Shown: in pieces, positions 506-54,792 of the stretch | How positions within the stretch are numbered: position 1 is the stretch's first letter | How the letters are laid out: each line of letters begins with the position of its first letter | IMG/VR virus record: IMGVR_UViG_3300030385_002649 | Span: 1 to 64,000 of that record | DNA length: 64,000 nt | Strand: one strand, 5' to 3' | Made by a program: the position numbers and the translations under genes | Notes under the pieces: generated by a model | What the model was told of the DNA's origin: nothing | What the model saw: the letters and a program-made list of their open reading frames with translations, nothing else | Database searches by the model: none

Positions 506-828
506 TCGAGCCTAAGGAAGGAAACTGCTATAGGGTTAAGATTGCGTACAATCTAAAGGAAGGCAGCACAAACTGTCCTCCCCTTCACAACTATGAAGGC
601 CCTGCTTATTGTCAGAATGTAGCCGTTGGAGGGTTCATCTGTTTGCTGTTCCTCATCATGCATGAGGCCAGCCAAGTGGTTCGCGCGCATATCCTCACTC
701 AAGAAGGCAGCGTCATTATCGAAGACCTCGGCCCTGGCGTTCCATTTCTATTAAACACTCAACAAGGAGTTGATGCGGAAGCCTTCGGCGGTTATCAGCA
801 TCAACCAGCCTACACAGGCAAGGAATAA
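496..828 (+). CDS. Hypothetical protein
   Basis: GTG start after GGAGG, overlapping the upstream stop. Confidence 0.7.
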   Translation: MQVIEPKEGNCYRVKIAYNLKEGSTNCPPLHNYEGPAYCQNVAVGGFICLLFLIMHEASQVVRAHILTQEGSVIIEDLGPGVPFLLNTQQGVDAEAFGGYQHQPAYTGKE

Positions 829-829
829 C

Positions 830-1162
830 ATGAAGAAATCAGTCAAGCTTGAGGACATGATCGGCAAGGACCTGAAAATCCTAGTCCAAGCCAGGACCTG
901 GAACATGAAGGAGAAGAAAAACGACTTCTCGAGAAAGATCTTTGTCGGAACGCTCACAACAATTCGTCAAAGTTCGCTCGTCATCGAACCCTGGTTCGAA
1001 GTCTTGGAAGTGAAGGATGGCCGTATCGTCTCTCATAAGGACACCGACTCGAAGTGTGGTAAGTACATCATGCACAGTGGGACGACTAAGGAGATGCTCC
1101 AAGTCGATGAGCTCGACTACTCCGGAGGCCCTTGGGTCGACGGCAAGCCCAAGCGATCATAA
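830..1162 (+). CDS. Hypothetical protein
   Basis: ATG at 830, just after the upstream stop, AAGGA RBS. Confidence 0.7.
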   Translation: MKKSVKLEDMIGKDLKILVQARTWNMKEKKNDFSRKIFVGTLTTIRQSSLVIEPWFEVLEVKDGRIVSHKDTDSKCGKYIMHSGTTKEMLQVDELDYSGGPWVDGKPKRS

Positions 1163-1200
1163 GGTTAGAAGCCGGGGTGGGAAACTACCCCGGCTTACCT
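1162..1200 (+). terminator. GC-rich hairpin with GAAA loop (possible terminator or processing site)
   Basis: AAGCCGGGGTGG-GAAA-CTACCCCGGCTT directly after the stop; no clear U-tract. Confidence 0.45.
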
Positions 1201-1204
1201 TATC

Positions 1205-1447
1205 ATGAGATACTTACCATGGAGCATCTGCGAAAACGACCCATCGTTGGTCATAGACGCAGGAGGTTGTGTCGCTATCGACCTCTCAGTCTGGGGCGCG
1301 CTTGGAAAAGGGCACGACGCTAAAGAAGTGGTTGCGTTCATCGTAGAACGAGCCAATCGAGAACATGTCACAGACGAAGAACAACGTCTAAAGGACGAGT
1401 TTCAAAAGGAGGAGGTTGATGAAGATCTTCCAACAGAGATTTTGTGA
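1205..1447 (+). CDS. Hypothetical protein
   Basis: ORF track, operon-like packing. Confidence 0.6.
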   Translation: MRYLPWSICENDPSLVIDAGGCVAIDLSVWGALGKGHDAKEVVAFIVERANREHVTDEEQRLKDEFQKEEVDEDLPTEIL

Positions 1448-1715
1448 GTTGAAAGCGCTAGACGCGCCAGACTGGGTGAAAAGAGGAGCTTACCTTAATC
1501 TTCTCCATCACCTTCCAATTGGCGAAGACTGGCTAGAGTGCAAAGACCGTTTTGGGCTTTGGATTCTGCTTGAAACCGTTGGAGTCTCCTTGAGCGAGGA
1601 AGAAGTTGAAATCTTCGTCCGAGAACTGAGTGTCGGCGTCGAACACATCGACCAAATCCTGAGGACAAGAGGCCACGCTAAACTGTGGCAAGAAACGGAC
1701 AAGTCATGGGAGTAG
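1419..1715 (+). CDS. Hypothetical protein
   Basis: ATG after GGAGG, overlapping the upstream gene. Confidence 0.65.
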   Translation: MKIFQQRFCELKALDAPDWVKRGAYLNLLHHLPIGEDWLECKDRFGLWILLETVGVSLSEEEVEIFVRELSVGVEHIDQILRTRGHAKLWQETDKSWE

Positions 1716-1842
1716 AGACTAGACCCAAGATGATCATTCTTGGTGACTTCCGATATGTGTGATGCTGCGATCCTAGTGGTGTCTCATTATTTTGCAAGTG
1801 GGACTCACGGAAGCTACGGCGCTACAACTTACTGGAGATAAG

Positions 1843-2757
1843 ATGAGAAACTTCGTCAGAAAAAACACAATCTTCCTAACCCTAGCAGGCTCAAGGATGT
1901 ACGGCACCAGCACGCCAGAATCGGACACTGACATCCGAGGTGTCTGCGTTCCACCAAAAAACGTCGTGCTAGGCTTCGCCAACAAGTTCGAACAACAAAT
2001 GATTCCTGACGAGGAAGACTCAATCATCTACGGGCTAAAGAAGTTCATGGCCTTGGCCGCTGAGTGTAACCCTAACATATTGGAATTGTTGTTCGCACCT
2101 GAGTCAGCGATCATAACTTCAACACCAACATGGGAAGCTCTGATCGAACACCGTGAAATGTTTATCACCGCTGCGGCTTACCCCAAGTTCAGCGGTTACG
2201 CGCTTAGTCAGCTAAAGAGAATTAGGTCTCATAGGGCCTGGTTGCTTAGTCCTCCCGCCAAGAAACCAACTCGTGAAGAGTACGGGCTGACAGACCAGCC
2301 AAGTAGCGGGCTGACCTTGGGGACGGACATGCTGGAACCAGAGACTCTCAAGAGGATCAAATCTGAGCGTCAGTTCAAAACCGCTTTGCGAGCTTGGAAT
2401 CAGTATCAAGGTTGGAAAAAGGACCGCAACCCTAAACGGGCCGTCCTTGAGGCTAGCTTCGGCTATGACACCAAGCATGCCATGCACCTTGTCCGTCTCC
2501 TAAGAATGGGCGAGGAGATTCTCACTCAGGGCAAGGTGATCGTCGAGCGACCCGATGCTGAAGAACTGCTCGACATCCGTCGTGGGAAATGGACCTATGA
2601 CCAACTAATGGAAAACGTTGAGCCGATGAAGAATCGGTTGGATAAAATTTTCGAAACCAAGTCTTACTCAATTCCTGATAGGGCTGACATCAACGCACTC
2701 TCTGACCTGTGTGCGGAACTTCACGAGAGGTTCTGGCACGAAAAGGAAACAAAATGA
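1843..2757 (+). CDS. Predicted nucleotidyltransferase (PF10127/RlaP-like, Pol-beta superfamily)
   Basis: LAGSRMYGTSTPESDTDIRGV (GS...DxD) motif, CNPNILELLF, KHAMHLVRLL; GGAG RBS before ATG 1843. Confidence 0.85.
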   Translation: MRNFVRKNTIFLTLAGSRMYGTSTPESDTDIRGVCVPPKNVVLGFANKFEQQMIPDEEDSIIYGLKKFMALAAECNPNILELLFAPESAIITSTPTWEALIEHREMFITAAAYPKFSGYALSQLKRIRSHRAWLLSPPAKKPTREEYGLTDQPSSGLTLGTDMLEPETLKRIKSERQFKTALRAWNQYQGWKKDRNPKRAVLEASFGYDTKHAMHLVRLLRMGEEILTQGKVIVERPDAEELLDIRRGKWTYDQLMENVEPMKNRLDKIFETKSYSIPDRADINALSDLCAELHERFWHEKETK

Positions 2758-3071
2758 AGTTCCAACTCCTCATCCTAGCTCTGTTGTTCTCAATAGGCTG
2801 CAGTTCTCCCACTAAGGCGTACGAGATCGTTCTAGATAGCGAACAGCTGAAAGAACTTCAAGATTGGAATTATCTCACGGTGGTGCCGACGGATGTCACA
2901 GTTCCTTGGTTCAAGATTGTCTCAGAAGACGGACCTAAGGTGACTGTCAAATTGGCTCGGCCTTTTCAACTCTTCTATCACCCCATTCTGCGGCGAACGG
3001 GATCGGCCCCAGTGTCTTCGAAGGATCAAGGCGAGAAACCCCGCACTTGGCAATCGCTTCAAGGAAAGTAA
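2754..3071 (+). CDS. Putative lipoprotein
   Basis: MKFQLLILALLFSIGC: signal peptide with lipobox-like Cys. Confidence 0.6.
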   Translation: MKFQLLILALLFSIGCSSPTKAYEIVLDSEQLKELQDWNYLTVVPTDVTVPWFKIVSEDGPKVTVKLARPFQLFYHPILRRTGSAPVSSKDQGEKPRTWQSLQGK

Positions 3072-3081
3072 GACTAAAGCA

Positions 3082-3333
3082 GTGAATAGCAAAATCGTCA
3101 TCGATCGACGGGCCAACATTAATGGCCAACCAGTCGTTATGGTCTACGGAATCGTCGTCGGCCAAGATTATGGCCTTCCTAATGATGGCAAGCGACGCAT
3201 AGTTGCTGCTGACACGTTGATCACGCCAGAAAGGGTTTACGTTGAAGACACTAACGATCATCTTGGTAGTCCTGAGGACATCCTGGCGCGTCACCTAAAC
3301 TTCGACCACTGGATCAAAGAAAATGGACATTGA
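3082..3333 (+). CDS. Hypothetical protein
   Basis: ORF track, packing. Confidence 0.55.
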   Translation: MNSKIVIDRRANINGQPVVMVYGIVVGQDYGLPNDGKRRIVAADTLITPERVYVEDTNDHLGSPEDILARHLNFDHWIKENGH

Positions 3334-5578: not shown

Positions 5579-5651
5579 GGGCTTGTAGCTCAGGGGTTAG
5601 AGCGCGACTCTTATAAGGTTGATGTCGATGGTTCGATTCCATCCTGGCCCA
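5579..5651 (+). tRNA. tRNA-Ile (anticodon TAT); CCA not encoded
   Basis: Cloverleaf: acceptor GGGCTTG/CTGGCCC, D-arm GCTC/GAGC, anticodon loop CT-TAT-AA, T-arm GATGG-TTCGATT-CCATC. Confidence 0.85.
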
Positions 5652-5654
5652 CTT

Positions 5655-5737
5655 GATCGAATGGCGGAATTTGGCAGACGCGCATGTTTCAAACACATGT
5701 TCCATTAGGAGTGAGGGTTCGAGTCCCTCTTCGATCA
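5655..5737 (+). tRNA. tRNA-Leu (anticodon CAA); CCA not encoded
   Basis: Acceptor GATCGAA/TTCGATC, anticodon arm CATGT-TTCAAAC-ACATG, long variable arm, GAGGG-TTCGAGT-CCCTC. Confidence 0.92.
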
Positions 5738-5752
5738 TGAAAATAATTTTCG

Positions 5753-5834
5753 GGACCTGTGGTGGAATTGGCATACACACAACACTTAAAATGTTGCGCC
5801 GCAAGGCTTGCGGGTTCGAGTCCCGCCAGGTTCA
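5753..5834 (+). tRNA. tRNA-Leu (anticodon TAA); CCA not encoded
   Basis: Acceptor GGACCTG/CAGGTTC, anticodon arm CAACA-CTTAAAA-TGTTG, long variable arm, GCGGG-TTCGAGT-CCCGC. Confidence 0.92.
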
Positions 5835-5883: not shown

Positions 5884-6357
5884 ATGCCAGCGTGCAGAGG
5901 ATGTCAAGAAAATTTTCCTAATCGGGCAACGATAGGTGGAAAAACTTTTAGCTTAAGAAGTAGAAAATTCTGTTTGTCTTGTTCACCTTTTAAGAAAATT
6001 AGAACAAGGAAAGAACGAAAACTAACACCCAAAACTTGGATTTGTTTTAATTGTAAAAAAGAACGAACTGAAAAAACAAGAAATATAGTCTGTGGAACAT
6101 GTAGATCACAGATTAGAAGAGCAAAATCTAGAAGCCAAGCAATTGACATAATGGGTGGAAATTGCGCCCGATGTGGGTACGATAAATGCTATGATGCTTT
6201 AGATTTTCATCATATAGGAGAGAAGCTCTTCGCATTGGCAGCGAACTGGCATCGTTCATGGAAGTCTATAGAAGAAGAAATTAAAAAATGTGAATTGCTA
6301 TGCGCGAATTGTCATCGTGAAGAGCACGCCCAAACAATTTTTAACAACAACCGATAG
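5884..6357 (+). CDS. HNH endonuclease with N-terminal Zn-ribbons (free-standing homing endonuclease-like)
   Basis: CARCGY...ALDFHH...CELLCANCHREEH; visibly AT-rich relative to flanks; adjacent to the tRNA cluster. Confidence 0.85.
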   Translation: MPACRGCQENFPNRATIGGKTFSLRSRKFCLSCSPFKKIRTRKERKLTPKTWICFNCKKERTEKTRNIVCGTCRSQIRRAKSRSQAIDIMGGNCARCGYDKCYDALDFHHIGEKLFALAANWHRSWKSIEEEIKKCELLCANCHREEHAQTIFNNNR

Positions 6358-6449
6358 GATTGAATCATGACAGATAAAGAGTATCCCATGAGGCATAGCC
6401 GACGTAAGTGTCCTGGATGTGGACGGCAGAACCGGGATTGTGATTGTCG

Positions 6450-6932
6450 ATGAAAGTTCTCTTCCTCGACTTTGATGGGCCGATCATTCCTGGTAGGGCC
6501 TGGCTCTTAAACAATCATCCAGGCGGCCTTTGGGAGGAGCCCTGCAAAACCTCTGGTGTTCTTGTTAATGAGGTTTTGCACCGTGCTGACGCTAAGTTGG
6601 TCATTTCTTCTACTTGGAGGAAGACTGGTGGGCTGGATGGCTGTAAGGACCTCTTGTACAAGGCTGGCATTGATTTGACCAGGCTGCACGATGATTGGGC
6701 CACTATTGCTTTAAATTCCTCCGAGGGCCATGTTCGGTCAATGGAGATCCTAGAATGGGTTTCTCGTCATGATGTTGAAAGCTTTATTGCGATTGATGAC
6801 ATGGAATTGAGGGGCCTTCCCGATGAGAATCGGGTTAAGTGCACGACAGCTGATGGGGTCCTTATGGACCATTTTGTTGAAGCGTGCAATAAGCTGGGCG
6901 TGGCTCCTTTCGATGGGGTCATGCTCTTTTAA
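6450..6932 (+). CDS. HAD-family phosphatase (HAD_SAK_2, RNA-repair type)
   Basis: VLFLDFDG, LVISSTWR, EILEW, FIAIDD motifs. Confidence 0.8.
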   Translation: MKVLFLDFDGPIIPGRAWLLNNHPGGLWEEPCKTSGVLVNEVLHRADAKLVISSTWRKTGGLDGCKDLLYKAGIDLTRLHDDWATIALNSSEGHVRSMEILEWVSRHDVESFIAIDDMELRGLPDENRVKCTTADGVLMDHFVEACNKLGVAPFDGVMLF

Positions 6933-7020
6933 TTTAACAATTTTGCCAGTTAGGCAATTAATTTTACAGCCCGTTTGGGCACAACCAGCCTACAATAATG
7001 TGGGCACACTGGAGTCTATT

Positions 7021-7305
7021 ATGTCGATCCTCAACTCGTTCAACAGCAACAACAACAGCAACGTCGGCAGCCTCTCCTTCACCATTCAGTATGGTACGGA
7101 GAAGGTTCACGTCGACGTCCGTCCCGAAGATCCCACCAGTCCTCAGAGCCTCGACGCGGCTTTGAAGGTCTACGCTGGGGCGCTGGGTTACGACTTCTCG
7201 CGGCCCGTGACTTGGCGTCGCGGTAGTGAGAACGTCGAGGCTACGACTCGCCCGCAGGCGGGTGAGACGTACCAAGCTGCGATGTCGCACGAGCAGAAGG
7301 GCTAA
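7021..7305 (+). CDS. Ubiquitin-like (beta-grasp) protein, copy 1
   Basis: 94 aa; strand-strand-helix-strand pattern typical of the beta-grasp fold; C-terminal ...HEQKG; upstream of E2/JAB/E1 genes; GGAG RBS. Confidence 0.75.
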   Translation: MSILNSFNSNNNSNVGSLSFTIQYGTEKVHVDVRPEDPTSPQSLDAALKVYAGALGYDFSRPVTWRRGSENVEATTRPQAGETYQAAMSHEQKG

Positions 7306-7315
7306 GTTTGCCCAA

Positions 7316-7345
7316 GGCGGAGGCACCCTTCGGGGTGCCTCCGCC
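7316..7345 (+). terminator. 13-bp stem hairpin with TTCG loop after Ubl copy 1
   Basis: GGCGGAGGCACCC-TTCG-GGGTGCCTCCGCC. Confidence 0.6.
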
Positions 7346-7422
7346 ACCTCTCTAGCATCGAGTACAAGATGAACACGACGTTTTATGGAAACAATTTTGA
7401 GTACCCCCACAGAGGAAGAACG

Positions 7423-8364
7423 ATGAAATCTGAAGTGAAGACGATGACGAAGACGGTGGCGGGTGAGAGTGATCCGCGCAAGAAACTGCTCGAACGCGCT
7501 ATTAGCCAAGTGGCGGATCAGAAGGCTTTGTTGGAAGCGGATCCTGTTGCGGTTCGTCAAATTCAGGCTGCACAATTGGCGCAGCAAGCTGCCAAGAGTC
7601 GCTTTGATGCTGACGCTCTTTTGGTTAGGGCTGAGAAGGCAGCGGAGGAAGCTGAGCGTTTTCGCCTTGAGCAGATCGAAACCAAGATCGCAGCCGAAAT
7701 TGAGCATCGAGAGAAGCTCATAGAAACCGAGCAACGGTTGGCCGATGAAATGCGCCAAGAGAAGCTCAATGAGGAGAGGCGCACCCTTGAGAATAAGTAC
7801 AAGGAGGGCGAGTTTAGGGAGGCTGCTCTAACCTCTGAACGCCGCGCCGATGAGTTTGCTGAGTGCAAGGCGCGCGAGTTGGGGCTGGACGGGAAAGACG
7901 GAGACGCCGAAAATACCGAAAATACCGAAAGCGGTCCGCTCAGCAGTGAGGAGATTGGCGCTCTCCAATTGATCGCGTTAAGCCCTGAAGGCGCTTGCGA
8001 GCAGTACGCCAGGGTCAAGCTGAACACTATGATCAGCGTTATGGCTAAGATCAACCGTCAATTGGCACGTGCTGTCGCTGATAAGACGAAGATCGCCATC
8101 GATAAGACGCTGGTCGAGCCGGACGAGGAGGCTGATACTCTTTGTCTGATGAACGACACGGTCCGAGACGAGATCTTGGATAGTTATCGTTCGAAGGGTT
8201 GGAATGTAGAAATTATGACTGGTCACCTGGATCATACAATCTACGTATTTGAGCCTTCGGAAATGGGGAAGGCTGATAAGGACGTCGTGAAGGCAGCAGC
8301 TTTGCCACTTGGCGACGTTTTTGATCAGCCAGAGGACGATGAAGTCCTCGAATTCGGAATCTAA
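7423..8364 (+). CDS. Coiled-coil protein between the two Ubl genes
   Basis: Long E/K/R/A-rich helical region; AGAGGA RBS before ATG 7423. Confidence 0.75.
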   Translation: MKSEVKTMTKTVAGESDPRKKLLERAISQVADQKALLEADPVAVRQIQAAQLAQQAAKSRFDADALLVRAEKAAEEAERFRLEQIETKIAAEIEHREKLIETEQRLADEMRQEKLNEERRTLENKYKEGEFREAALTSERRADEFAECKARELGLDGKDGDAENTENTESGPLSSEEIGALQLIALSPEGACEQYARVKLNTMISVMAKINRQLARAVADKTKIAIDKTLVEPDEEADTLCLMNDTVRDEILDSYRSKGWNVEIMTGHLDHTIYVFEPSEMGKADKDVVKAAALPLGDVFDQPEDDEVLEFGI

Positions 8365-8365
8365 A

Positions 8366-8393
8366 ACACAACACACAACACACAACACACAAC
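8366..8393 (+). repeat. 7-bp tandem repeat (ACACAAC)x4
   Basis: Directly visible, intergenic, followed by hairpin 8401-8431. Confidence 0.95.
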
Positions 8394-8479
8394 AACTCAT
8401 TGTCCTCCCCCGCATGGTGTGAGGGAGGACATGGTTCGAACCGCACTTTTAAGTGCACATTTTTTGGAGAAAATTTCTT

Positions 8480-8779
8480 ATGTCGATTCTTAACAGCTTC
8501 TCAAGCAACAACGCCAACAACGCCAACAACGCCAGCATTGGCTCTTTCACCTTCACCATTCAGTATGGTACGGAGAAGGTTCACGTCGACGTCCGTCCGG
8601 ACGATCCCACCAGCCCCGAGTCGCTCGATGCAGCGCTGAAGGTCTACGCTGGTGCCCTCGGTTACGACTTCTCGCGGCCTGTGACCTGGCGTCGCGGTAG
8701 TGAGAACGTCGAGGCTACGACTCGCCCGCAGGCGGGTGAGACGTACCAAGCTGCGATGTCGCACGAGCAGAAGGGCTAA
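8480..8779 (+). CDS. Ubiquitin-like (beta-grasp) protein, copy 2
   Basis: 99 aa, near-identical to 7021..7305, same C-terminal ...HEQKG. Confidence 0.75.
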   Translation: MSILNSFSSNNANNANNASIGSFTFTIQYGTEKVHVDVRPDDPTSPESLDAALKVYAGALGYDFSRPVTWRRGSENVEATTRPQAGETYQAAMSHEQKG

Positions 8780-8801
8780 ACAACCCTTCTAGTTCAAGAG
8801 C

Positions 8802-8842
8802 GGGGGACGACGGGGTTAATTCCTCGTCGTCCCCCTTCTTTT
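8802..8842 (+). terminator. Rho-independent terminator after Ubl copy 2
   Basis: GGGGGACGACG...CGTCGTCCCCC followed by TTCTTTT. Confidence 0.7.
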
Positions 8843-8986
8843 AATGTTATCAAGTCACAAGATCGAGGTTGCCTTGAAGTTGATCGTGACATCATTTATA
8901 GCATTTAATACCTAGATGGGCGATAATTCAACCTCGTCGCCCTTTAAGGCGCTGACGCATTCAAATTCAACAGTCAGGAGACTACA

Positions 8987-10501
8987 ATGTCTATCTTCTC
9001 GTCTGGTCTAAGTAAAGACAAGCACAACGAGATCTTCAAGAGGGTAGTGGGTACAATCATCCCGATTCCAAGTGAATCAGGCGGCGTGATTGTCATGTGG
9101 GAGAAGGCGCGGCTCAAGATCAGCTGTATCCTTCCCCCAACCACACGAGTCTGTAAAGCCAAATGGACCAAGGTTTCAAACCGTTTCGACCAAAAGGACT
9201 TCGAGATTGACACACCCACGCTAATCATGTCAGGCACCTGTGGGTCTGACTTTGGCGGAGAAACCCCGCCGATTCCAATAGGAGAAAGCAACCGTGCTAT
9301 CGAATTCCGACGCGGGTCACACATCCGAGATAAGGTGTCGCTAGCAGCGCTTAACGTCAACGCCAAAGACCGTATCATGGTCAAGCCGTACCGACTGGCT
9401 AACGTCTACGACAACAGCAACATCTGCTGGGGAGGAAACAGCATCCCCAAAACTCTGCGAGAGGCAAACAATCTCTTCTGGAGCGCGCCGTTCAACTGCG
9501 ACTTTGGCGGGCCATTGCACGACAAGATGTGCAAAAACATCGAGCATATGAAAGATGCCGACATAGGCAACGGTTGTGGAACTGCAAGATTCGTCCACCG
9601 TCAAGCATTGCACTCGGTTTGCCAATGCAGCGAGGGCCGCGCAATACCCCCCCGCGAAGGAAGTTCTTTGTGTAGTTATTGCGGTATGATCTGGCCCGAC
9701 AAGGTTAGCCCAGAAATCGCAGAACGATCCAAAATTGTGGGTGGTCTTAACCTCTGCACTATTGGCTTATGCGACTCAATGGAATGCAGATGTCTGTGTC
9801 AGTGCTGTAGCAACAACTGTCGGTGTGTGTGCACGTGCGACCTCACTGACGCCTTCATCAAAGGTCTCAAGGATTACGCAACGTCTGATGAGAACGGCTC
9901 GCACTGGCAAGACTATTACCCTCTCGGCAGCCTGTCGTGGGAAGACTGGACTCGGCCTATCTGTGGGACACGCTACAATCGTGAAAACCCGCAGTTCATG
10001 TCGTACACCGGAAAGTGTGACGGAGTCTTCATCTCCTATGATAAGAAGTTCGTCTCTAGTCATCCTGAGGATGTCCAACGCAACCACGCTGGGCACAAGT
10101 GTATCATCGGTCTCTATACGATGACTCCGACCGGATACGAGATTGATCTTGGTAAGACTAAGATCAATCTCCCCAGCAAGAAGGTCCTCCAAGTCTACGA
10201 CATGTGGGAGACCCAAGATCAGCGCGTCGAGCGTGAGAACGAAGAATACCGTGTTCGTCAAGAACAAGAACGTGTCCGAGCGGCCCAACTTCGTGAAGAA
10301 CGACTCGCGCTCGTGCAATTGCGACGAATCCGAGACGATAAGGCACGAGCGATTGTCGCCAAGAGTGTTGCTGATACGGAACTCGCCGAGGACAAGGATG
10401 CACTTAGCATCTATACGAATTATTTCCTAAGGTTGGAAAACGCGGCAGTCATCGACGCGATGATCACTGCCGACGAACGACCCATCACTTATCAATACTA
10501 A
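8987..10501 (+). CDS. Prokaryotic E2-like protein (Prok-E2_D/PRTRC-B-like) fused to a Cys-rich cluster and a C-terminal coiled coil
   Basis: YRLANVYDNSNICWG...NLFWSAPFNCDF matches the prokaryotic E2-family pattern with the putative catalytic Cys; gene context. Confidence 0.7.
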   Translation: MSIFSSGLSKDKHNEIFKRVVGTIIPIPSESGGVIVMWEKARLKISCILPPTTRVCKAKWTKVSNRFDQKDFEIDTPTLIMSGTCGSDFGGETPPIPIGESNRAIEFRRGSHIRDKVSLAALNVNAKDRIMVKPYRLANVYDNSNICWGGNSIPKTLREANNLFWSAPFNCDFGGPLHDKMCKNIEHMKDADIGNGCGTARFVHRQALHSVCQCSEGRAIPPREGSSLCSYCGMIWPDKVSPEIAERSKIVGGLNLCTIGLCDSMECRCLCQCCSNNCRCVCTCDLTDAFIKGLKDYATSDENGSHWQDYYPLGSLSWEDWTRPICGTRYNRENPQFMSYTGKCDGVFISYDKKFVSSHPEDVQRNHAGHKCIIGLYTMTPTGYEIDLGKTKINLPSKKVLQVYDMWETQDQRVERENEEYRVRQEQERVRAAQLREERLALVQLRRIRDDKARAIVAKSVADTELAEDKDALSIYTNYFLRLENAAVIDAMITADERPITYQY

Positions 10502-10510
10502 GGATAACCA

Positions 10511-11962
10511 ATGTATTATGGTGACGAAGATTCTTATTTCGCAGAGTATTTTGATCATGGGCATGGCGCCCCTAAAAGTGGGAGCACTAACGTGAGCAAC
10601 ACAGAACCTGACAAGTCGAAAGCCGTCTGGCTAAACCGAGGCAACCGGAAGAAGGAACTCCCTCTTCCGTCTGAGATGGCAAACTTCGTCCGAGCCGAGG
10701 ACGGATGTTATGAAGTCATCAGTTCATCGGCGTGGGGTTCGGTAATTATCTCAGTCCGTGACCCTGATGCTAACACCAAGCTCACCCATCACGACAGGAA
10801 GGGAATCAAGCTGATTGACGACTTCCCAGTCCTCCCTAAGGAGCTGTGGGGTCCGATCATCGGATTGTACTTCCACTATTGCAAGCCGCCCAAGAATCAG
10901 TGGGCGAAGAGCGACGATAACGAGGTCAGTGTCGTCCTCCTGCGTCGGATGGATGACCTTTCCAAGTGGAAGGTTGTCGTGCCTAAGCAAATCGTTGATG
11001 GCGCGTCAGTTCGTGCCGACTTCGAGGAGTGCTGCGACATTGTGACCGGTGAGAAGTATGACAGCTTCCCCCCGATTGACAAGGACGATGACGGCAACGA
11101 TGTCTTTTGGGTCCACGCTGGTTCGTCTCACAGTCACAACACAATGGGAGCCTTCTTCTCCTCAACGGACGATGAATCTGAGCTTGGGGTGCCTGGCATG
11201 CACATCGTGGTTGGAAAGATTGACAACAAGAAGGGTGAGTATTGCCCTAAGGCGAGCATCGTTCTCCGAGGCGAGCGTAAGGAGATCGATATTGACGACG
11301 TTGTTGATACGACCCCTTTCAGTGCTGAATTCCACAAGAACTGTCTGGAGTTGGTGACTGAGAAATCGTACTCTTACAACACCACGCCGTACAGTTCTAA
11401 TCGGTATGGCAGTTACAATGGAGGGTACAATGGAGGGTACAACACGACGCCGATTTCTCGGCCTCTGTTCTTGACCGGTGGTCCGATTGATCAGGTTTGG
11501 GTGCCTGATGCTGAGTGGGACAACAAGAACAATTGTTGGACCTATGAGGGTCTTTTGGAGGGCTTTGACGTGGTTACCACGGTCGGCGAGACTGAGTATA
11601 TTGGTCGCGTCACCAAACATGATCTGCTCGGCCTCGGCATCAAGACTGGTACACATAACGGAGTCGAGCACTTTGTTGGATGGGCTAAGCTCAAGACTAC
11701 GGAAGTCCAGGAGTACGACTACGTTGAGTCAGCCTTAGAGGATACTGACGCCATGCTTCCCGTTCTTGATGAGGACGAAAATGAGTTTGGTATCTGGGGT
11801 TATCCTTCCTTACAATTGGCGGATGAGGAGGAAACTGCCAATCTAACAAGACAAAATCTTGATAAGAAGCACGAGGAAAGAGCGCTCACGCGACGTGAAG
11901 CTCTCGCGCAGCTTATCGGCAACCGCCGCCCTAACCCGAACATGCAACCTCCAATCGTTTAG
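10511..11962 (+). CDS. JAB/JAMM metallopeptidase (deubiquitinase-like, PRTRC-A-like) with N- and C-terminal extensions
   Basis: Exact HxH-x7-S-x2-D motif HSHNTMGAFFSSTD, upstream Glu in DNEVSVVL, downstream MHIVVGKI. Confidence 0.85.
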   Translation: MYYGDEDSYFAEYFDHGHGAPKSGSTNVSNTEPDKSKAVWLNRGNRKKELPLPSEMANFVRAEDGCYEVISSSAWGSVIISVRDPDANTKLTHHDRKGIKLIDDFPVLPKELWGPIIGLYFHYCKPPKNQWAKSDDNEVSVVLLRRMDDLSKWKVVVPKQIVDGASVRADFEECCDIVTGEKYDSFPPIDKDDDGNDVFWVHAGSSHSHNTMGAFFSSTDDESELGVPGMHIVVGKIDNKKGEYCPKASIVLRGERKEIDIDDVVDTTPFSAEFHKNCLELVTEKSYSYNTTPYSSNRYGSYNGGYNGGYNTTPISRPLFLTGGPIDQVWVPDAEWDNKNNCWTYEGLLEGFDVVTTVGETEYIGRVTKHDLLGLGIKTGTHNGVEHFVGWAKLKTTEVQEYDYVESALEDTDAMLPVLDEDENEFGIWGYPSLQLADEEETANLTRQNLDKKHEERALTRREALAQLIGNRRPNPNMQPPIV

Positions 11963-11971
11963 GAGAATACT

Positions 11972-12718
11972 ATGAAAATCGACCACGCAATCATTATCGG
12001 AGCCGGTGGTACTGGCTCACACCTCATCGAACCCCTCGTCCGACTGCTGCATTATCATGAGGATGGCACCAAGTCAATCACTGTTATCGATGGTGACCAG
12101 TACGAGGACTCCAACTCGACCCGCCAACTGTTCAGCAAAGAACTGATGGGGGTCAACAAGGCCGAGGCCCAGGGTCGCAAGATTGACTTCGCTGAGCTTC
12201 GGATCGTCCCAGAGTACGTCAACGACCTCAAGATGCGACGCGTCATGAACGAGATCGGAGCCGCTGAAGACGACATGATCCTTCTGATCCTTGCGGTGGA
12301 CAACCATGCCACCCGCAGCGCGGTCATGAAGATGTTGACGAGCGATGAATACCAGAACTTCGCTGTCCTATCACCGGGCAACGATTTCAGCCACGGCCAA
12401 GTGGTGTGTTGGGCTCGCATCAATGGGGAGGACAAGACTCAGCACCCGTTCGAGAGATACCCGCTCCTTGAATTCCCCGAGGACAACATTCCTGGGTTGG
12501 GTTGCGCGGAGGAAGCTGTTAGCACTCCTCAGTTGATCATGGCCAACGCTCTGGCAGCGGTCTCGACCAATCTCTACGTGTCTAACATCTTGGATAACAA
12601 GCCGATCCCTGATGAGATCCACTTCAACGTGTATAGCCTCAAGATTGTCCCGTCCGAGGGCACTGAGGTCATTCTCGCCTTAGAAACTGGCGAAACCTCC
12701 GAAGTCCTAGCTGGATGA
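11972..12718 (+). CDS. ThiF/E1-family Ubl-activating enzyme
   Basis: IIGAGGTG, DGDQYEDSNSTRQ, NKAEA, AVDNHATR, putative catalytic Cys in GLGCAEE, QLIMAN. Confidence 0.9.
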   Translation: MKIDHAIIIGAGGTGSHLIEPLVRLLHYHEDGTKSITVIDGDQYEDSNSTRQLFSKELMGVNKAEAQGRKIDFAELRIVPEYVNDLKMRRVMNEIGAAEDDMILLILAVDNHATRSAVMKMLTSDEYQNFAVLSPGNDFSHGQVVCWARINGEDKTQHPFERYPLLEFPEDNIPGLGCAEEAVSTPQLIMANALAAVSTNLYVSNILDNKPIPDEIHFNVYSLKIVPSEGTEVILALETGETSEVLAG

Positions 12719-12918
12719 CTGAGGCTCAGTTTGCCTGCCAGGTGGCTGAAATCCTGGCGGGCATGGGGAGGGACGATCTGGACGACAACGGAGTCGTCCT
12801 TCCTTTTCGGGGCCTTTCTCGTCCTGCTGTCCAAATTGTGGACAATTTAGTTACGGTTGTCGTTCAAGATAACGGCGGACAACCACAAACCTTTCAACTC
12901 CACGCTAAAAAGCTCTAG
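12715..12918 (+). CDS. Hypothetical protein coupled to E1
   Basis: ATGA overlap with the E1 stop. Confidence 0.6.
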   Translation: MTEAQFACQVAEILAGMGRDDLDDNGVVLPFRGLSRPAVQIVDNLVTVVVQDNGGQPQTFQLHAKKL

Positions 12919-25883: not shown

Positions 25884-27071
25884 ATGGAATCAATTATTCA
25901 ATTCTTGCGTGACGCTAAGAATAGAGGACAGGACCCTCTACAAGCTCTACGTGATAGGAAAACCAACATCCAGATCTACCGAAATCCAGCCTACGATGAT
26001 CTCGTTGGCCTGAAATGCCTCGGAAAGGAACTCGGAAAGATTGATCGTGAGTGCAATGGGATTGTTATCGATGTGAGACGCATAATCCCAATTGCTGTGC
26101 CTTTCAATGTCTGGCGCAATGACAATGACAACGGCGATGCGCTATTCAATTGGTGTAACTTTAGCTATACTGACAAGGAAGATGGCTTTCTGGCTATCTT
26201 GTATTACTACGATGATCACTGGCAGGTTAACACCGATGACTCGTTCGGGTATGGCAAGGTGCCTAACTTTTCGGGAAACTGGAGAGACCTGTTCTGGAAG
26301 CACGCGCCTGAAAGTCTGATCGATGGGCTGCGGACGTATGATCGGAACGCGCACACCACTTTCTTGTTTGAGGTGTGCGCTCCTGAGATACGGACGGTCC
26401 GTAAGCATGCTGAGCCTAAGATCACGCTGGTGGGGATCAATAACTTCGATAGTCGTAGAATGCTGACTGACTATGGCGTCTATGATGTGATGAGTATGGC
26501 AAACAGGTTCGGCGTCAATGCCATCAAGTTCACCGAGTTCTACGCTCGTGGAGTCTCCAGAGCGAGAATAAATGCCATGGCAGAGATTAACGCTTATCTA
26601 GCGTCTAAGACCGAAAACGATCCGACCTTTGAAGGTGTCGTCCTTAGGGATGATCACAATCGGAGGCTTGTCATACAGACTGAGACTTTCAAAACTCTCA
26701 GGCGGTTGAAGGGCATCAAGTCCATGAAACCTGAGAACATCGTCCCGCTCTGTATGAAGGGCGAAAACGAACAGTTCTTTAGTGCTTTGCCAGATTGTGT
26801 TAGCGCTTTCAAGACGGTTAGCGGAAAGCTGACAGAGGCTTTTAAGGACCTGAGCGAGACTTGGATGTCACACAGGGAGCTTGAGACCAACAAGGACTTC
26901 GCCGAGCAAGTTAAGGAACACCCATTCGGTTGGCTCCTTTTTAAAATGCGTAAGATCAATCCTGGGGGCAGCCCTGAGGATCTTAGGCAACTTTGGCGCG
27001 ATAAGTGCCATCACCAAAAGATTTCCGAGAAGCTTTTCGGGGATCAAGTTCTAGAGTACACGGAGATTTAA
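25884..27071 (+). CDS. T4 Rnl1-like RNA ligase homolog, apparently degenerate
   Basis: KEDG (motif I), FLFEVCAP, EGVVL (motif IV) retained; motif V reads RLVIQ instead of KxK. Confidence 0.65.
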   Translation: MESIIQFLRDAKNRGQDPLQALRDRKTNIQIYRNPAYDDLVGLKCLGKELGKIDRECNGIVIDVRRIIPIAVPFNVWRNDNDNGDALFNWCNFSYTDKEDGFLAILYYYDDHWQVNTDDSFGYGKVPNFSGNWRDLFWKHAPESLIDGLRTYDRNAHTTFLFEVCAPEIRTVRKHAEPKITLVGINNFDSRRMLTDYGVYDVMSMANRFGVNAIKFTEFYARGVSRARINAMAEINAYLASKTENDPTFEGVVLRDDHNRRLVIQTETFKTLRRLKGIKSMKPENIVPLCMKGENEQFFSALPDCVSAFKTVSGKLTEAFKDLSETWMSHRELETNKDFAEQVKEHPFGWLLFKMRKINPGGSPEDLRQLWRDKCHHQKISEKLFGDQVLEYTEI

Positions 27072-29015: not shown

Positions 29016-30098
29016 ATGGCTACTAAAGCACCACTATTGCCAGACATTATGGCATCCGACCTAACCAAAGTCGCAATTTTTCTAGGGGCTCAACCAGATC
29101 CTGACGGGCTGGCTTCCCAGCACATGATGGCCGAACTCATCAGGATCAAGAACCCATCAGTGATAATTGGAAAATTCCATCGAGGAGACTTCAGTCATCC
29201 CCAGAACTCCACCATGGTGCAACTGTTAGGAATGGACTCTATTCCCTACAGCGAGTTCAATAAGGATGACGGTTGGTCTACTATCATTTCATGCGATGGA
29301 CCGCCGAGCGTGTGCCCAAGCTATCGGACTGAAAGCGGCGGGACTAAGACTGTAATTCCTGATTTCGTAATTGACCACCATGAGCAGAAGGGGCCCAAGC
29401 CAAGTGGTGGGGCCGACGTTCGCCCAATCGGGTCTTGCTCATCGATAATGTGGGAATACGCCATGGAGTCTGGTTACGACTTCGGCACAGAAGAGGGAGT
29501 AAAGCTGGCGACAGCACTCGGCGTCGGAATCAACACTGACACCCGGTTTGGAGGGGAAGAATCCTGTTCTCCCCTTGACTATGAGGCCCTAGCTTATTGC
29601 CAGATTAACAAGGATGATAAGCTTTACCGCGACATTCTTAATTATCCTAAGCCTGAGTACTTCATGGACTTGATGGTGGATGGGTGGAAGCATAAAGTTC
29701 CTGAAGGTAACGTTCTTGTTACAGGAATTGGGACTCTTAACCCGGCTCGTGTCTGGGTCGTACCGGCTCTGGCCGAAGAGTATCTTAAAATGTCCGGGGT
29801 CGATACGACCGTGGTTTTCGCCATCATTGAAGGGCCGGAAGGCAACTATATCAAGATTAGCGTCCGCTCGAACCGATCATCCCTTAACGTGGACACCTTC
29901 ACTAGACAAGCTTTTGGCTCTGGAGGCGGCAAGCGTGGCGCTGGAGCAGCGACTGTTAGTGTTCCCCCTCTGCTTCAGTGTTCTGAGGCAAGCCAAAGAG
30001 ATAAGTTCTATGAGGCTGTCCGAGAAATGATCATCCACAAGACGCTTCAAACTGCCAATGACGGGGCTAGGTCTAAGAAGGAAGAAGCAGCAGAATGA
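29016..30098 (+). CDS. DHH/DHHA1-family phosphoesterase (NrnA-like)
   Basis: QPDPDGLAS, IISCDG, VIDHH, GINTDT, ISVRS, GSGGGKRGAGAA. Confidence 0.85.
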   Translation: MATKAPLLPDIMASDLTKVAIFLGAQPDPDGLASQHMMAELIRIKNPSVIIGKFHRGDFSHPQNSTMVQLLGMDSIPYSEFNKDDGWSTIISCDGPPSVCPSYRTESGGTKTVIPDFVIDHHEQKGPKPSGGADVRPIGSCSSIMWEYAMESGYDFGTEEGVKLATALGVGINTDTRFGGEESCSPLDYEALAYCQINKDDKLYRDILNYPKPEYFMDLMVDGWKHKVPEGNVLVTGIGTLNPARVWVVPALAEEYLKMSGVDTTVVFAIIEGPEGNYIKISVRSNRSSLNVDTFTRQAFGSGGGKRGAGAATVSVPPLLQCSEASQRDKFYEAVREMIIHKTLQTANDGARSKKEEAAE

Positions 30099-30958
30099 TC
30101 ACTGAAGCAACAGTAAAAGCTGGTTGGCCTAGCACCTTAGGATCACTGAAGGATAGAACCTTCAAATTCACAAAAGGGGTCAACATCCTGTTCGGCCCTA
30201 ACGGGTGCGGCAAGACAACGCTGATGCAAATAATGGGTTCCTATTCTGGATGCCCGGAATTTGGAGGCTGGTCCAAATTTGTCGATCCTTACATCAAAAA
30301 AGGCCGTCCGTTTCCTCAGGGGTTCCAGGATTTGGCCCCTGGTGGTAAGTCCCTTAGCGAGAACGAGGAATTGGCTTCTATCGTGTGGAATGGGGCTCCC
30401 AGCTTCTTGCATATGGCGCACAGGTCTGACCAAGACATGCAGTACTTCGGTGAAGAGCACGATTTGCTGACCGACATGCAGCGATTAAGTTCCGTCTTAA
30501 AGCGTAGGTCTTCTGGCCAAGAACGGTTAGCTCGGATTGCTGCTCTGTGTGAAACTCTTCAAGCTCCTCCTGATCTTAGCGTTGTTAATGATTTGGTCAA
30601 GAACGCTAATGATGAGTTTGTTAACGCTGAGGACGAGTTTAGGGCTTTCGTCGCTAGGTGCAAGGAGGAGAACGAGGATGGCCCGGTAACTTGCTTGTTG
30701 GATGAACCGACCCGTTCTATGGACATCATCACGACGGTTGCTTTTTGGCGGAATGTCGTGCCTCGGTTGGCCGAGAGTTGTCAATTGATTATTGCTACTC
30801 ATTGTCCTCTTGTTTTGCTAGCTCCGCCTCCGGGCGATGGTTATTACAACATGGTTGATATGAGAGAAGGTTATGAGAAACTCGCCAGGAGTTACATGGC
30901 TGCGATGATTGATGATGAGAAACTCCCTAGCGTCAACGGAAGTTGGTGGGCTAGCTAA
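30095..30958 (+). CDS. ABC-type ATPase (AAA_21-like)
   Basis: Walker A GPNGCGKTT, signature SSGQE, Walker B LLDEPT, IATH. Confidence 0.85.
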   Translation: MITEATVKAGWPSTLGSLKDRTFKFTKGVNILFGPNGCGKTTLMQIMGSYSGCPEFGGWSKFVDPYIKKGRPFPQGFQDLAPGGKSLSENEELASIVWNGAPSFLHMAHRSDQDMQYFGEEHDLLTDMQRLSSVLKRRSSGQERLARIAALCETLQAPPDLSVVNDLVKNANDEFVNAEDEFRAFVARCKEENEDGPVTCLLDEPTRSMDIITTVAFWRNVVPRLAESCQLIIATHCPLVLLAPPPGDGYYNMVDMREGYEKLARSYMAAMIDDEKLPSVNGSWWAS

Positions 30959-31889: not shown

Positions 31890-32027
31890 ATGATCGAATC
31901 TTTAAATTCCGTTCTGACTTTCCTAAGAAATGACCCTGGTCTCATGTTGGGGTTGCTAGTATTGATCCCATTAGTGATCATCTTCTTCTTCGGAAAGGAA
32001 CCATCTGGGCCGGGAAGTGCAGTGTGA
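31890..32027 (+). CDS. Small single-TM protein (45 aa)
   Basis: GGAG RBS, hydrophobic core; below the ORF-track length cut-off. Confidence 0.5.
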   Translation: MIESLNSVLTFLRNDPGLMLGLLVLIPLVIIFFFGKEPSGPGSAV

Positions 32028-32217
32028 GCAATATCCCCGGCCATAGTTTCAGTGGTGTACGGGCCATCACTTGGAACCCACAAGTCCCGCAAAAATTCAT
32101 GTTTCAGAATAAGACCATCGGCATTTTATCATCTGAGCCGTGGAAACACGAAACCGAAGAAGGCGACCTCCTCCTGGTGAGAGTTGCCATCTTTAAGCCA
32201 ATAGTGGAAAAAGAAGA

Positions 32218-33885: not shown

Positions 33886-33936
33886 TATGTATCTTACCTT
33901 TGCTTATTTACCCCCAAATATATCAATGGAGAAATC

Positions 33937-50042: not shown

Positions 50043-50209
50043 TGCCAGTGCGAGAAGTGAGTAGCGCGGAGACATGTAGGTGTTCTCACACTTTCTACGA
50101 TCATGATTGGTTGACAAGGTCAATATGGAAATGCACCTTGTGTAATTGTACGGATCATGGCCCATGGCTTTCACATTTCTTGCACCATGTATTGCACTAC
50201 AAATTTTAG
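50042..50209 (+). CDS. Small CRCxH-x4-H Cys/His protein, family member 2 (55 aa, not in the ORF track)
   Basis: TAATG coupling; CRCSHTFYDH...CTLCNCTDHGPWLS. Confidence 0.65.
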   Translation: MPVREVSSAETCRCSHTFYDHDWLTRSIWKCTLCNCTDHGPWLSHFLHHVLHYKF

Positions 50210-50264
50210 TTCGCGATTACTAATTTTTCAACAAGTATTTTATAATCTCAAAAGGAGGTGCCAA

Positions 50265-54746: not shown

Positions 54747-54748
54747 CC

Positions 54749-54772
54749 GATGGGGCCTTTCGGGGCCCCATC
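54749..54772 (+). terminator. Hairpin after the stop codon
   Basis: GATGGGGCC-TTTCGG-GGCCCCATC. Confidence 0.55.
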
Positions 54773-54792
54773 TTCAACATAAAGGGAAAATT

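Follow-up and report, generated by a model that had tools for sequence, protein, structure and literature searches.

A predicted ubiquitin-like protein tagging cassette encoded by a large uncultured phage

The PRTRC-type cassettes, described as operon class 6d in the 2006 survey of Iyer, Burroughs and Aravind (PMC1779556), combine a small ubiquitin-like protein (Ubl) with a JAB peptidase, an E1 and an E2-like protein, and are represented by the NCBIfam models PRTRC_A/B/C/ThiF and the Pfam families Prok-E2_D and Prok-JAB. However, no experiment on any system of this type was found, and the E2 assignment of Prok-E2_D itself rests on profile and threading arguments from 2006. The characterised bacterial Ubl systems, namely type II CBASS and Bil (bacterial ISG15-like), are all anti-phage (PMC11601596, PMC11601603). 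Here we describe a cassette with the same types of components in a 370.8-kb uncultured phage contig, IMG/VR UViG_3300030385_002649, of which the first 64,000 nucleotides (hereafter the window) were analysed. The contig is viral: it is an IMG/VR UViG and carries rIIA/rIIB, PurZ-like, Rnl1-like ligase and homing endonuclease genes as well as three tRNAs.

Components and predicted folds

Six co-oriented genes were identified in the cassette (Table 1). The start of Ubl1 was assigned at position 7021, since the longer ORF from 6823 is a stop-to-stop artefact overlapping the upstream HAD gene, homologues start at MSIL, and a GGAG lies 6 nt upstream. Both Ubl proteins end in ...HEQKG, while the motifs ANVYDNSNICWG (E2-like protein, residues 137-148), HSHNTMGAFFSSTD (JAB, residues 207-220) and GAGGTG, DGD..N..RQ and GLGC (E1) are all present. 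The E2-JAB and JAB-E1 gene pairs are each separated by only 9 nt.

Table 1 Coordinates of the cassette and associated features in the 64,000-nt window
Feature	Position	Strand	Description
Ubl1	7021-7305	+	94 aa; ubiquitin-like (predicted β-grasp) protein
Hairpin	7320-7343	+	GC-rich, 10-bp stem, TTCG loop, no T-run; not scored as a terminator by the scan
Helical protein	7369-8364	+	331 aa; orphan; charged, helix-type central region (residues 41-180 are 71% E/K/R/A/Q/L), C-terminal part of unknown fold
Ubl2	8480-8779	+	99 aa; paralogue of Ubl1
Hairpin	8802-8835	+	Strong, intrinsic-terminator-like; 14 pairs (11 G-C) followed by a T-run
E2-like protein	8987-10501	+	504 aa; Prok-E2_D-type core (about 20-175, active-site loop N139...C147), Cys/His-rich insert (about 176-290, 17 Cys), conserved β-rich domain (about 320-400), long helical tail (410-494)
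JAB/JAMM metallopeptidase	10511-11962	+	483 aa; JAB-N-like N-terminal extension, variable C-terminal tail
E1	11972-12718	+	248 aa; single-domain ThiF-type adenylating enzyme
Small ORF	12715-12918	+	67 aa; ATG overlaps the E1 stop (ATGA); membership of the cassette uncertain
Terminator-like hairpin	12780-12799		Inside the small ORF
AAA-type ATPases	30095-30958, 44364-45680, 54709-56172		No link to the cassette

To assess the fold of the small proteins, Ubl1 was modelled with AF2. The model, which rests on only 10 sequences (pLDDT 75), showed a β-grasp with ββ-α-ββ-β order and a disordered tail at residues 89-94, and its top 50 Foldseek matches in the PDB were SUMO, ubiquitin or other ubiquitin-like chains, including the bacterial Ubl 8tyx. 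The tail ends in an invariant Lys-Gly, rather than Gly-Gly, across 17 copies from 16 contigs, 6 of which carry 1-2 extra residues. The two Ubls of this contig are 94% identical over 80 aa and 89% identical in DNA over 265 nt. Residues 43-94 (Ubl1 numbering) are identical in protein, whereas the flanks are unrelated, and a dN of 0.054 and dS of 0.306 (dN/dS 0.18) indicate purifying selection on both copies.

The E1 matched Pfam ThiF (PF00899) above the cut-off (7e-12; 45.4 bits against 28.1), and its best family was PRTRC_ThiF (4e-18), although at 65.6 bits against a TIGR03736 cut-off of 144.75. Residues G10/G12/G13/G15, D42, N48, R51, K63, D110, R115 and C178 were invariant in 37 sequences, including named PRTRC ThiF proteins and two cultured phages, and the family profile hit ThiF, SUMO E1, Uba4, UBA5 and MoeB at 1e-12 to 1e-14. 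In the JAB protein, E138, H207, H209, S217 and D220 were invariant in 24 sequences that include bacterial PRTRC_A-like proteins, whereas R61 and W75 of the N-terminal extension were invariant in the 5 closest sequences but not in the 24-sequence alignment. Its scores were below the cut-offs for both Prok-JAB (4e-4) and PRTRC_A (1.4e-4; 21.4 bits against 101.8).

The E2-like assignment is less certain. The protein itself scored 21.4 bits (2e-4) against a Prok-E2_D gathering cut-off of 25, PRTRC_B gave only 0.07, and a Foldseek search of the whole AF2 model, though not of the 20-175 core alone, found nothing significant in the PDB. Nevertheless, it belongs to a family of 266 representatives (E<=1e-3), and of 70 sampled members, 54 hit Prok-E2_D (best 6e-10), Cys147 was the only invariant column and Asn139 was present in 69. 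Short E2 relatives lack the Cys-rich insert yet keep Cys147.

The helical protein had no Pfam, PHROG or PADLOC family, only a sub-threshold NCBIfam match, no PDB relative and no IMG/VR relative other than its own contig. It occupies the place where class 6d operons carry a fast-evolving α-helical protein, but no homology was shown. The 67-aa ORF likewise matched no family and is not conserved in relatives.

Distribution among viral contigs

To investigate whether this arrangement recurs, related loci were searched in IMG/VR and other assemblies. As a result, the Ubl-JAB-E2-E1 set was found with conserved synteny in 18 further IMG/VR contigs and several other assemblies. The set recurs in about 20 large viral contigs, and these four genes were the only ones conserved around each other in 21 loci. 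One relative showed Ubl-JAB-E1 with no E2 in the 17 kb fetched. Identities to relatives were 44-61% for E1, 40-49% for the JAB core, 23-39% for E2 and 27-34% for Ubl. In one relative, an endonuclease-like insertion splits the JAB gene exactly in the JAMM motif, the kind of site that mobile introns favour in conserved genes. A phylogenetic tree analysis showed that the E1s of these contigs form a clade with 99/99 support, separate from bacterial PRTRC. Bacterial E2-JAB-E1 triads were hit by the same profiles, and one of their E1s passed the TIGR03736 cut-off at 148.1 bits. No close relatives were found in 185,579 species genomes.

These results support the original prediction of a Ubl, E2, JAB and ThiF/E1 operon related to PRTRC-type cassettes, with each component assignment holding up as far as these tools can test it. 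However, the extended E2 and JAB proteins, regarded there as making the arrangement unusual, are typical of the whole phage clade, and only the Ubl duplication and the intervening helical gene are unique to this contig. The uses proposed there, such as tagging host proteins, decoying defences or feeding AAA ATPases, remain speculative, and the AAA link has no support.

Possible mechanism and role

The most likely explanation, held with moderate confidence, is a phage-borne Ubl conjugation and deconjugation module belonging to a phage-restricted clade of the PRTRC/class 6d cassettes. In the inferred mechanism, the Ubl is made from two paralogous genes, each followed by a strong hairpin, and exposes a flexible tail ending in Lys93-Gly94. 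The E1 would bind ATP and adenylate Gly94 through its GxGGxG loop, Arg51 and Asp110, and take up the Ubl as a thioester on Cys178. The Ubl would then be passed to Cys147 of the E2-like protein, whose loop N-V-x3-G/S-x-I-C places the Asn eight residues before the Cys, probably as in the HPN...C motif of canonical E2s, and be transferred to lysines of target proteins. The JAMM metallopeptidase would remove the tag and, in relatives whose Ubl carries 1-2 residues after the Gly, also mature the precursor. Every chemical step is inferred, as is the role of the two Cys residues as thioester sites, and no target, E3 or effector was identifiable. With regard to the biological role, the phage may tag host or phage proteins during infection for its own benefit, by host takeover or counter-defence. 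This inference rests only on the character of neighbouring genes. The cassette sits among counter-defence-type genes (RNA-repair set, rIIA/B, PurZ-like), while the target-facing parts (Ubl, E2) evolve much faster than E1 and JAB. A more far-reaching version is possible but tentative, in which a clade of large bacteriophages runs its own complete cascade, covalently tagging host proteins such as defence or proteostasis factors or shielding its own proteins, with the Cys/His-rich insert of the E2 acting as a built-in E3-like targeting domain. This would be the first virus-side protein-tagging system among viruses of bacteria, mirroring the host-side Bil and CBASS systems.

Alternatively, the same biochemistry might serve as a weapon against competing phages or other mobile elements (superinfection exclusion), working like Bil, which tags a phage tail protein. 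The anti-phage role of the characterised bacterial systems, the location of bacterial PRTRC/6d relatives on mobile elements, and the behaviour of the cassette as a self-contained module with varying neighbours are in line with this view. It is nevertheless unlikely, as no PADLOC model matched the Ubl, E2 or JAB and only the generic E1 core did, close relatives were absent from the species genomes searched, and neighbouring genes in the window look like counter-defence rather than exclusion genes. Less likely still, the cassette could be centred on the peptidase, stripping host Ubl or CD-NTase conjugates (Bil, type II CBASS) from phage or host proteins, with the phage Ubl, E1 and E2 as decoy or regulator. 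By best BLAST hit, E1 (61%) and JAB (48%) are indeed the most conserved cassette genes, and deconjugating enzymes are a natural counter to Bil and CBASS. However, E1 Cys178, E2 Cys147 and the Ubl terminal Gly are as strictly conserved as the JAMM site, which would not be expected if conjugation were dispensable, and a peptidase alone would be enough for stripping.

A sulfur-carrier function, in which E1 adenylates the Ubl to form a thiocarboxylate for thiolation of tRNA, DNA or a cofactor, as with ThiS/MoaD/TtuB, and the E2-like protein is a sulfur relay or metal-cluster protein, is very doubtful. The E1 is closest in sequence to ThiF, MoeB and Uba4, the window is rich in tRNA and RNA-modification or repair genes, and the E2-like insert is Cys-rich. 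Against this, the E1 has no rhodanese domain and no CxxC zinc site, no sulfurtransferase, PP-loop, thiamine or molybdopterin family was found among the 40 window ORFs scanned against Pfam, the Ubl ends in K-G, short E2 relatives dispense with the insert, and the JAB plus E2 context is that of class 6d. A role as virion assembly chaperones like lambda tail assembly proteins I and K is equally improbable, because although a Ubl plus JAB pairing is known in lambdoid tail assembly (PMC1779556), no structural gene flanks the cassette here or in relatives, the JAB is not fused to NlpC/P60, and the 'structural proteome' of Salmonella phage Arash lists 116 proteins, including ribonucleotide reductases and RNA polymerase, and so shows expression rather than virion location.

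Comparison with known systems

The locus shares with eukaryotic SUMO/ubiquitin cascades a modifier whose best structural matches are SUMO and ubiquitin, as well as the E1 adenylation core, but there is no sequence similarity in the modifier, the E1 has a single domain, the terminus is K-G, and no E3 is recognisable. Similarity to type II CBASS is seen in the E1 core (PADLOC E1-E2 2e-7; PDB Cap2 3e-7) and the JAB partner. However, Cap2 is an E2-E1 fusion whose substrate is a CD-NTase, not a Ubl, whereas E2 and E1 are separate genes here and no nucleotidyltransferase partner was found. Bil systems also have separate Ubl, E2, JAB and E1 genes with reversible conjugation to lysines as the proposed chemistry. 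Nevertheless, the single-domain E1 differs from the Bil type I/II E1, with its tandem inactive/active adenylation domains and Cys domain, PADLOC BilD scored only 0.009, there were no BilA/B/C hits, and Bil is host-encoded and targets phage.

Weaker E2-JAB-E1 triads, in the same gene order, were found in the cultured Bacillus phage vB_BceM_WH1 (gp214-216; also phage Edson) and Salmonella phage Arash (gp248c-246c), where they are annotated only as hypothetical, ThiF or 'structural'. They are very distant (E1 about 27% identical) and fall outside the 99/99 phage clade as separate long branches in the E1 tree. Their E2s are short and lack the Cys-rich insert, and no Ubl was recognised next to them.

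The PRTRC/class 6d cassettes are the closest described systems, sharing the small Ubl with a conserved terminal Gly, what appear to be an E2-like protein that lacks the HPN histidine but keeps the Cys and a JAB with an N-terminal extension, a single-domain E1 without rhodanese, an extra helical protein, and the E2-JAB-E1 gene order of the Microcoleus and Desulforudis loci. However, all three enzymes of the window score below the curated PRTRC cut-offs, and an NCBIfam scan, whose library should include the PRTRC models, returned no match for the Ubl. No ParB-related gene or further PRTRC protein (D, E, F) was found among the 10 cassette and flanking proteins scanned against NCBIfam or the 40 window ORFs scanned against Pfam, and the downstream His reported for 6d E2s is not conserved. 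Furthermore, the E2 is enlarged by its Cys/His-rich insert and helical tail, the JAB is about twice as long, and the cassette is carried by large phages, in a separate E1 clade.

Gene content and viral context

The cassette comprises six co-oriented genes, and all motifs cited in the original prediction were present. An ORF of 160 aa listed from position 6823 was a stop-to-stop artefact overlapping the upstream HAD gene; all homologues start at M-S-I-L and a GGAG lies 6 nt before the ATG of Ubl1. The E2-JAB and JAB-E1 gene pairs are each separated by 9 nt. The stop codon of E1 overlaps the ATG of a 67-aa ORF (ATGA) that was not conserved in relatives; a terminator-like hairpin lies inside this ORF, and it is unclear which of the two is real. 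A run of ACACA-type repeats, followed by two small hairpins, lies between the 331-aa gene and Ubl2.

The window is part of the 370,804-bp contig IMGVR_UViG_3300030385_002649 and belongs to a deep-branching uncultured jumbo phage. Its proteins matched PHROG families for rIIA and rIIB, a PurZ-type adenylosuccinate synthetase, a T4 Rnl1-like RNA ligase, a nucleotidyltransferase and several HNH homing endonucleases, and nearly all large ORFs are located on one strand. A blastn search of the cassette against 50,697 GenBank phages found nothing, and the rIIA protein was at most 29% identical to that of any deposited phage over the matched part, which covered half to three-quarters of its length. An RNA-repair-type gene set is spread around the cassette, and the HAD-then-Ubl order was retained in the related locus L010. 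Furthermore, a low-GC island (0.373 against about 0.47-0.50) holds the only large minus-strand gene, encoding HNH plus Mom-like domains, directly before the PurZ-type gene, which hints at 2-aminoadenine DNA. The suggestion in the original prediction that tagged proteins might be routed to AAA ATPases encoded later in the window was rejected, as these genes lie 17-42 kb away and are not conserved with the cassette.

Coordinates of the cassette genes, surrounding features and features in related loci
Sequence	Feature	Coordinates	Strand	Length
Window	RlaP nucleotidyltransferase	1792-2757		
Window	Three tRNA genes	5579-5834		
Window	HAD_SAK_2	6444-6932		
Window	Ubl1	7021-7305	+	94 aa
Window	Conserved Ubl N-terminus	7021-7060		
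Window	331-aa protein	7369-8364	+	331 aa
Window	ACACA-type repeats	8366-8395		
Window	Ubl2	8480-8779	+	99 aa
Window	E2-like protein	8987-10501	+	504 aa
Window	JAB peptidase	10511-11962	+	483 aa
Window	E1	11972-12718	+	248 aa
Window	ORF overlapping the E1 stop	12715-12918		67 aa
Window	Terminator-like hairpin	12780-12799		
Window	T4 Rnl1-like ligase	25884-27071		
Window	DHHA1 phosphoesterase	29016-30098		
Window	Low-GC island	32001-35064		
Window	Gene with HNH plus Mom-like domains	32218-33885	-	
Window	PurZ-type adenylosuccinate synthetase	33937-35064		
Window	MoxR-like ATPase	44364-45680		
Window	DUF2201 VWA/metallopeptidase protein	50157-51680		
Window	Classical AAA ATPase	54709-56172		
Window	Second ligase	60272-60913		
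L002	JAB frame split in public gene calls	6844-8004		386 aa
L003	JAB frame split in public gene calls	701-1861		386 aa
L029 (IMGVR_UViG_3300035681_000001)	Split JAB gene	5965-8711		
L029 (IMGVR_UViG_3300035681_000001)	Endonuclease-like ORF	6484-7389		301 aa
L015	Helical protein after E1	8879-9280		roughly 110 aa
L017	Helical protein after E1	2902-3258		roughly 110 aa
L018	Helical protein after E1	8795-9256		roughly 110 aa
L022	Helical protein after E1	10099-10464		roughly 110 aa
L024	Helical protein after E1	8907-9251		roughly 110 aa
L027	Helical protein after E1	8806-9177		roughly 110 aa
L028	Helical protein after E1	9979-10329		roughly 110 aa
L031-L034 (Promethearchaeum, including strain MK-D1 chromosome)	Loci with adjacent JAB-E1 gene pairs	449053-461313 (MK-D1)		

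Sequence and structure analyses of the cassette proteins

Ubl1 and Ubl2 were 94% identical over 80 residues and 89% identical in DNA, with a dN of 0.054, a dS of 0.306 and a dN/dS of 0.18. Their flanks were unrelated, whereas residues 43-94 were identical in protein, indicating an old duplication of the coding sequence alone with both copies kept under purifying selection. A word-indexed search of 5.8 billion proteins returned only 7 members of the family. However, divergent copies were located immediately upstream of the enzymes in related contigs. An alignment of 17 copies from 16 contigs showed an invariant Lys-Gly, which forms the very end of the protein in 11 copies and is followed by one or two residues (L, F, Y, RH, LG, VY) in the other 6. 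A conserved glycine that is either terminal or followed by a short removable tail is the classic signature of a conjugatable modifier. The N-terminus was also conserved across the clade (M-S/G-I/F/L-L/F-N/D...) and is followed by a low-complexity Asn/Ser/Thr/Ala-rich linker of variable length. An AlphaFold2 model built from 10 sequences (pLDDT 75, pTM 0.59) showed the order ββ-α-ββ-β with the last six residues disordered. The 50 best Foldseek matches in the PDB were SUMO, ubiquitin or other ubiquitin-like chains, including the bacterial Ubl 8tyx, with a best E-value of 6e-4 and a TM-score normalized to the target of about 0.65. The viral structure library likewise returned mostly ubiquitin-like proteins.

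For the E1, the Pfam ThiF model passed its cut-off at 7e-12, and the best NCBIfam model was PRTRC_ThiF at 4e-18, although its 65.6 bits fell below the cut-off of 144.75. An alignment of 37 relatives included two proteins named PRTRC ThiF by their source and the E1s of Bacillus phage vB_BceM_WH1 and Salmonella phage Arash. In this alignment, the nucleotide loop (G10, G12, G13, G15), D42, N48, R51, K63, D110, R115 and a single cysteine, C178, were invariant. The family profile hit structures of ThiF, SUMO E1, Uba4, UBA5 and MoeB at 1e-12 to 1e-14. Neither a rhodanese domain nor a CxxC zinc site is present.

The JAB retained the complete JAMM constellation, with E138, H207, H209, S217 and D220 invariant in 24 sequences that included bacterial PRTRC_A-like proteins and the two cultured phages. 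It is about twice the length of its bacterial counterparts. R61 and W75 in its N-terminal extension were invariant among the five closest relatives, recalling the JAB-N domain with a conserved Arg and Trp described for class 6d, but this did not hold in the wider alignment. A PDB search with the JAB family profile found nothing. In the related viral contig L029, the JAB gene is split exactly inside the JAMM motif, with the first part ending ...HSHNTM plus a few residues, the second starting at ...AFFSG and an endonuclease-like ORF between them, probably reflecting a mobile intron or homing-endonuclease insertion at the active-site codons. In another relative (L002/L003), the public gene calls divide the JAB gene into small opposite-strand ORFs, but a continuous frame was 40% identical to the JAB of the window, so the annotation is wrong there.

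The E2-like protein was the weakest assignment and was therefore examined most extensively. On its own it hit Prok-E2_D at 2e-4, below Pfam's cut-off, and word-indexed searches returned only 3 relatives. An exhaustive HMMER search of 1.84 billion representatives with a profile of five relatives identified 266 proteins at E<=1e-3 and 132 at E<=1e-10. Among 70 of them, Cys147 was the only invariant column, N139 was present in 69 of 70, G144, G149 and W165 were nearly invariant, and 54 of the 70 hit Prok-E2_D, with a best value of 6e-10. The loop reads N-V-x3-G/S-x-I-C-W/F-G, placing the Asn exactly eight residues before the Cys, a spacing that appears to match the HPN...C motif of canonical E2s. 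The AlphaFold2 model (pLDDT 77) showed confident domains at about 20-175 and 320-400, a poorly defined stretch at 176-310 and long helices at 410-494. Nevertheless, a Foldseek search, conducted with the whole chain rather than with the core alone, found no significant PDB match, so the UBC-like fold was not confirmed, and the E2 family profile gave only spurious coiled-coil or surface-protein hits in the PDB. The stretch at 176-316 carries 17 Cys, and the equivalent stretch has 17-31 Cys in a long subgroup (about 25 of 70 representatives), whereas a short subgroup lacks the insert but keeps Cys147. This Cys/His-rich insert is probably a metal-binding module, while an E3-like action would be speculative.

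Distribution of the cassette in viral contigs

To investigate the distribution of the cassette, contigs encoding E1 relatives were examined and showed the same neighbours. A scan of IMG/VR with the JAB profile returned 19 viral contigs of 39-284 kb, and local profile searches showed Ubl-JAB-E2-E1 as the commonest order, or Ubl-E2-JAB-E1 as in the window, in nearly all of them. L002/L003 showed Ubl-JAB-E1 with no E2 in the 17 kb fetched. All-against-all clustering indicated that these four genes were the only ones consistently conserved around each other, with the exception of a helical protein that follows E1 in seven related viral contigs. This protein is absent from the window and may be a fifth cassette component, analogous to the helical protein of class 6d. 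Identity to relatives fell in the order E1 44-61%, JAB core 40-49%, E2 23-39% and Ubl 27-34%; the likely target-facing parts therefore evolve fastest.

A phylogenetic tree of E1 showed that these loci form a clade with 99/99 support, separate from bacterial PRTRC E1s and from the long branches of phages WH1 and Arash. Of the 22 rows of the clade, 14 came from IMG/VR viral contigs, 4 from general assemblies labelled viral from their phage-like gene content, and 3 were unlabelled metagenomic proteins. A scan of one genome for each of 185,579 species found no close relatives or prophages, so no host could be inferred, and revealed only distant E2-JAB-E1 triads in Microcoleus, cyanobacterial MAGs and Desulforudis. 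The Microcoleus E1 passed the PRTRC_ThiF cut-off (148.1 against 144.75), whereas the Desulforudis E1 fell just short (132.3). In both loci, the neighbouring genes aligned over about 160-170 of the roughly 190- and 230-position PRTRC_A and PRTRC_B models. Adjacent JAB-E1 gene pairs in Asgard archaea (loci L031-L034) were also picked up by the phage JAB and E1 profiles at weak scores, but no E2 or Ubl was detected with these profiles.

The second Ubl and the intervening 331-aa gene occurred only in this contig. The 331-aa protein had no family, no PDB relative and no IMG/VR relative, and its residues 41-180 are 71% E/K/R/A/Q/L. It sits where class 6d operons carry a fast-evolving helical protein, although no homology was shown. 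Ubl1 is followed by a 10-bp GC-rich hairpin without a T-run, Ubl2 is followed by a 14-bp hairpin with a T-run, and a promoter-like site precedes the E2 gene. We infer that this layout would suit high expression of the Ubl relative to the enzymes. The paired Ubl genes and the Cys/His-rich insert of the E2 are new architectural features that may bear on how targets are chosen.

Inferred mechanism and comparison with known systems

The original prediction that the phage carries its own protein conjugation and deconjugation pathway was supported. In the best-supported mechanism, which is the canonical one and is inferred at every chemical step, E1 adenylates the terminal Gly, the Ubl forms a thioester on E1 Cys178, is transferred to E2 Cys147 and is conjugated to lysines of target proteins, while JAB reverses the conjugation and in some relatives also matures the precursor. 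The role is unknown, but a pro-phage function during infection is favoured, because the window is rich in counter-defence-type genes (RNA-repair set, rIIA/B, PurZ-like) and because the Ubl and E2 evolve fast. Inter-phage exclusion is the next most likely alternative, followed by a peptidase-centred counter-defence. Sulfur transfer is less likely still; sulfur-carrier systems fail a defining feature. Virion assembly is the least likely; the lambda tail-assembly pair also fails a defining feature, and the 'structural protein' label on two Arash homologues comes from a particle proteome of 116 proteins that includes ribonucleotide reductases and RNA polymerase and thus shows expression rather than location.

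Every experimentally characterized bacterial Ubl conjugation system so far (type II CBASS, Bil, Bub) is host-encoded, and where the role is known, it is anti-phage. A conserved, phage-restricted cassette with all four predicted activities suggests that phages use the same chemistry from their side of the conflict. No description of a phage-borne cassette of this kind was found in full-text searches, although the collection searched was incomplete and prior description cannot be excluded. Distant E2-JAB-E1 triads exist, unrecognized, in the cultured phages vB_BceM_WH1 (gp214-216), Edson and Arash (gp248c-246c).

PHROGs had no family for the Ubl, E2, JAB or 331-aa protein, and PADLOC matched only the generic E1 core. 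Bil and type II CBASS each failed a defining feature. In contrast, the cassette appears to match part for part class 6d of Iyer, Burroughs and Aravind (PMC1779556), now called PRTRC, which was predicted in 2006 and for which no experiment was found: a small Ubl with a terminal Gly, an E2-like protein without the HPN histidine, a JAB with an N-terminal extension, an E1 without rhodanese and a helical protein. However, all curated PRTRC score cut-offs were missed, no ParB-like partner is present, and the downstream histidine reported for 6d E2s is not conserved in this family. The cassette is therefore regarded as a phage-restricted variant related to PRTRC rather than as a member by the curated definition.
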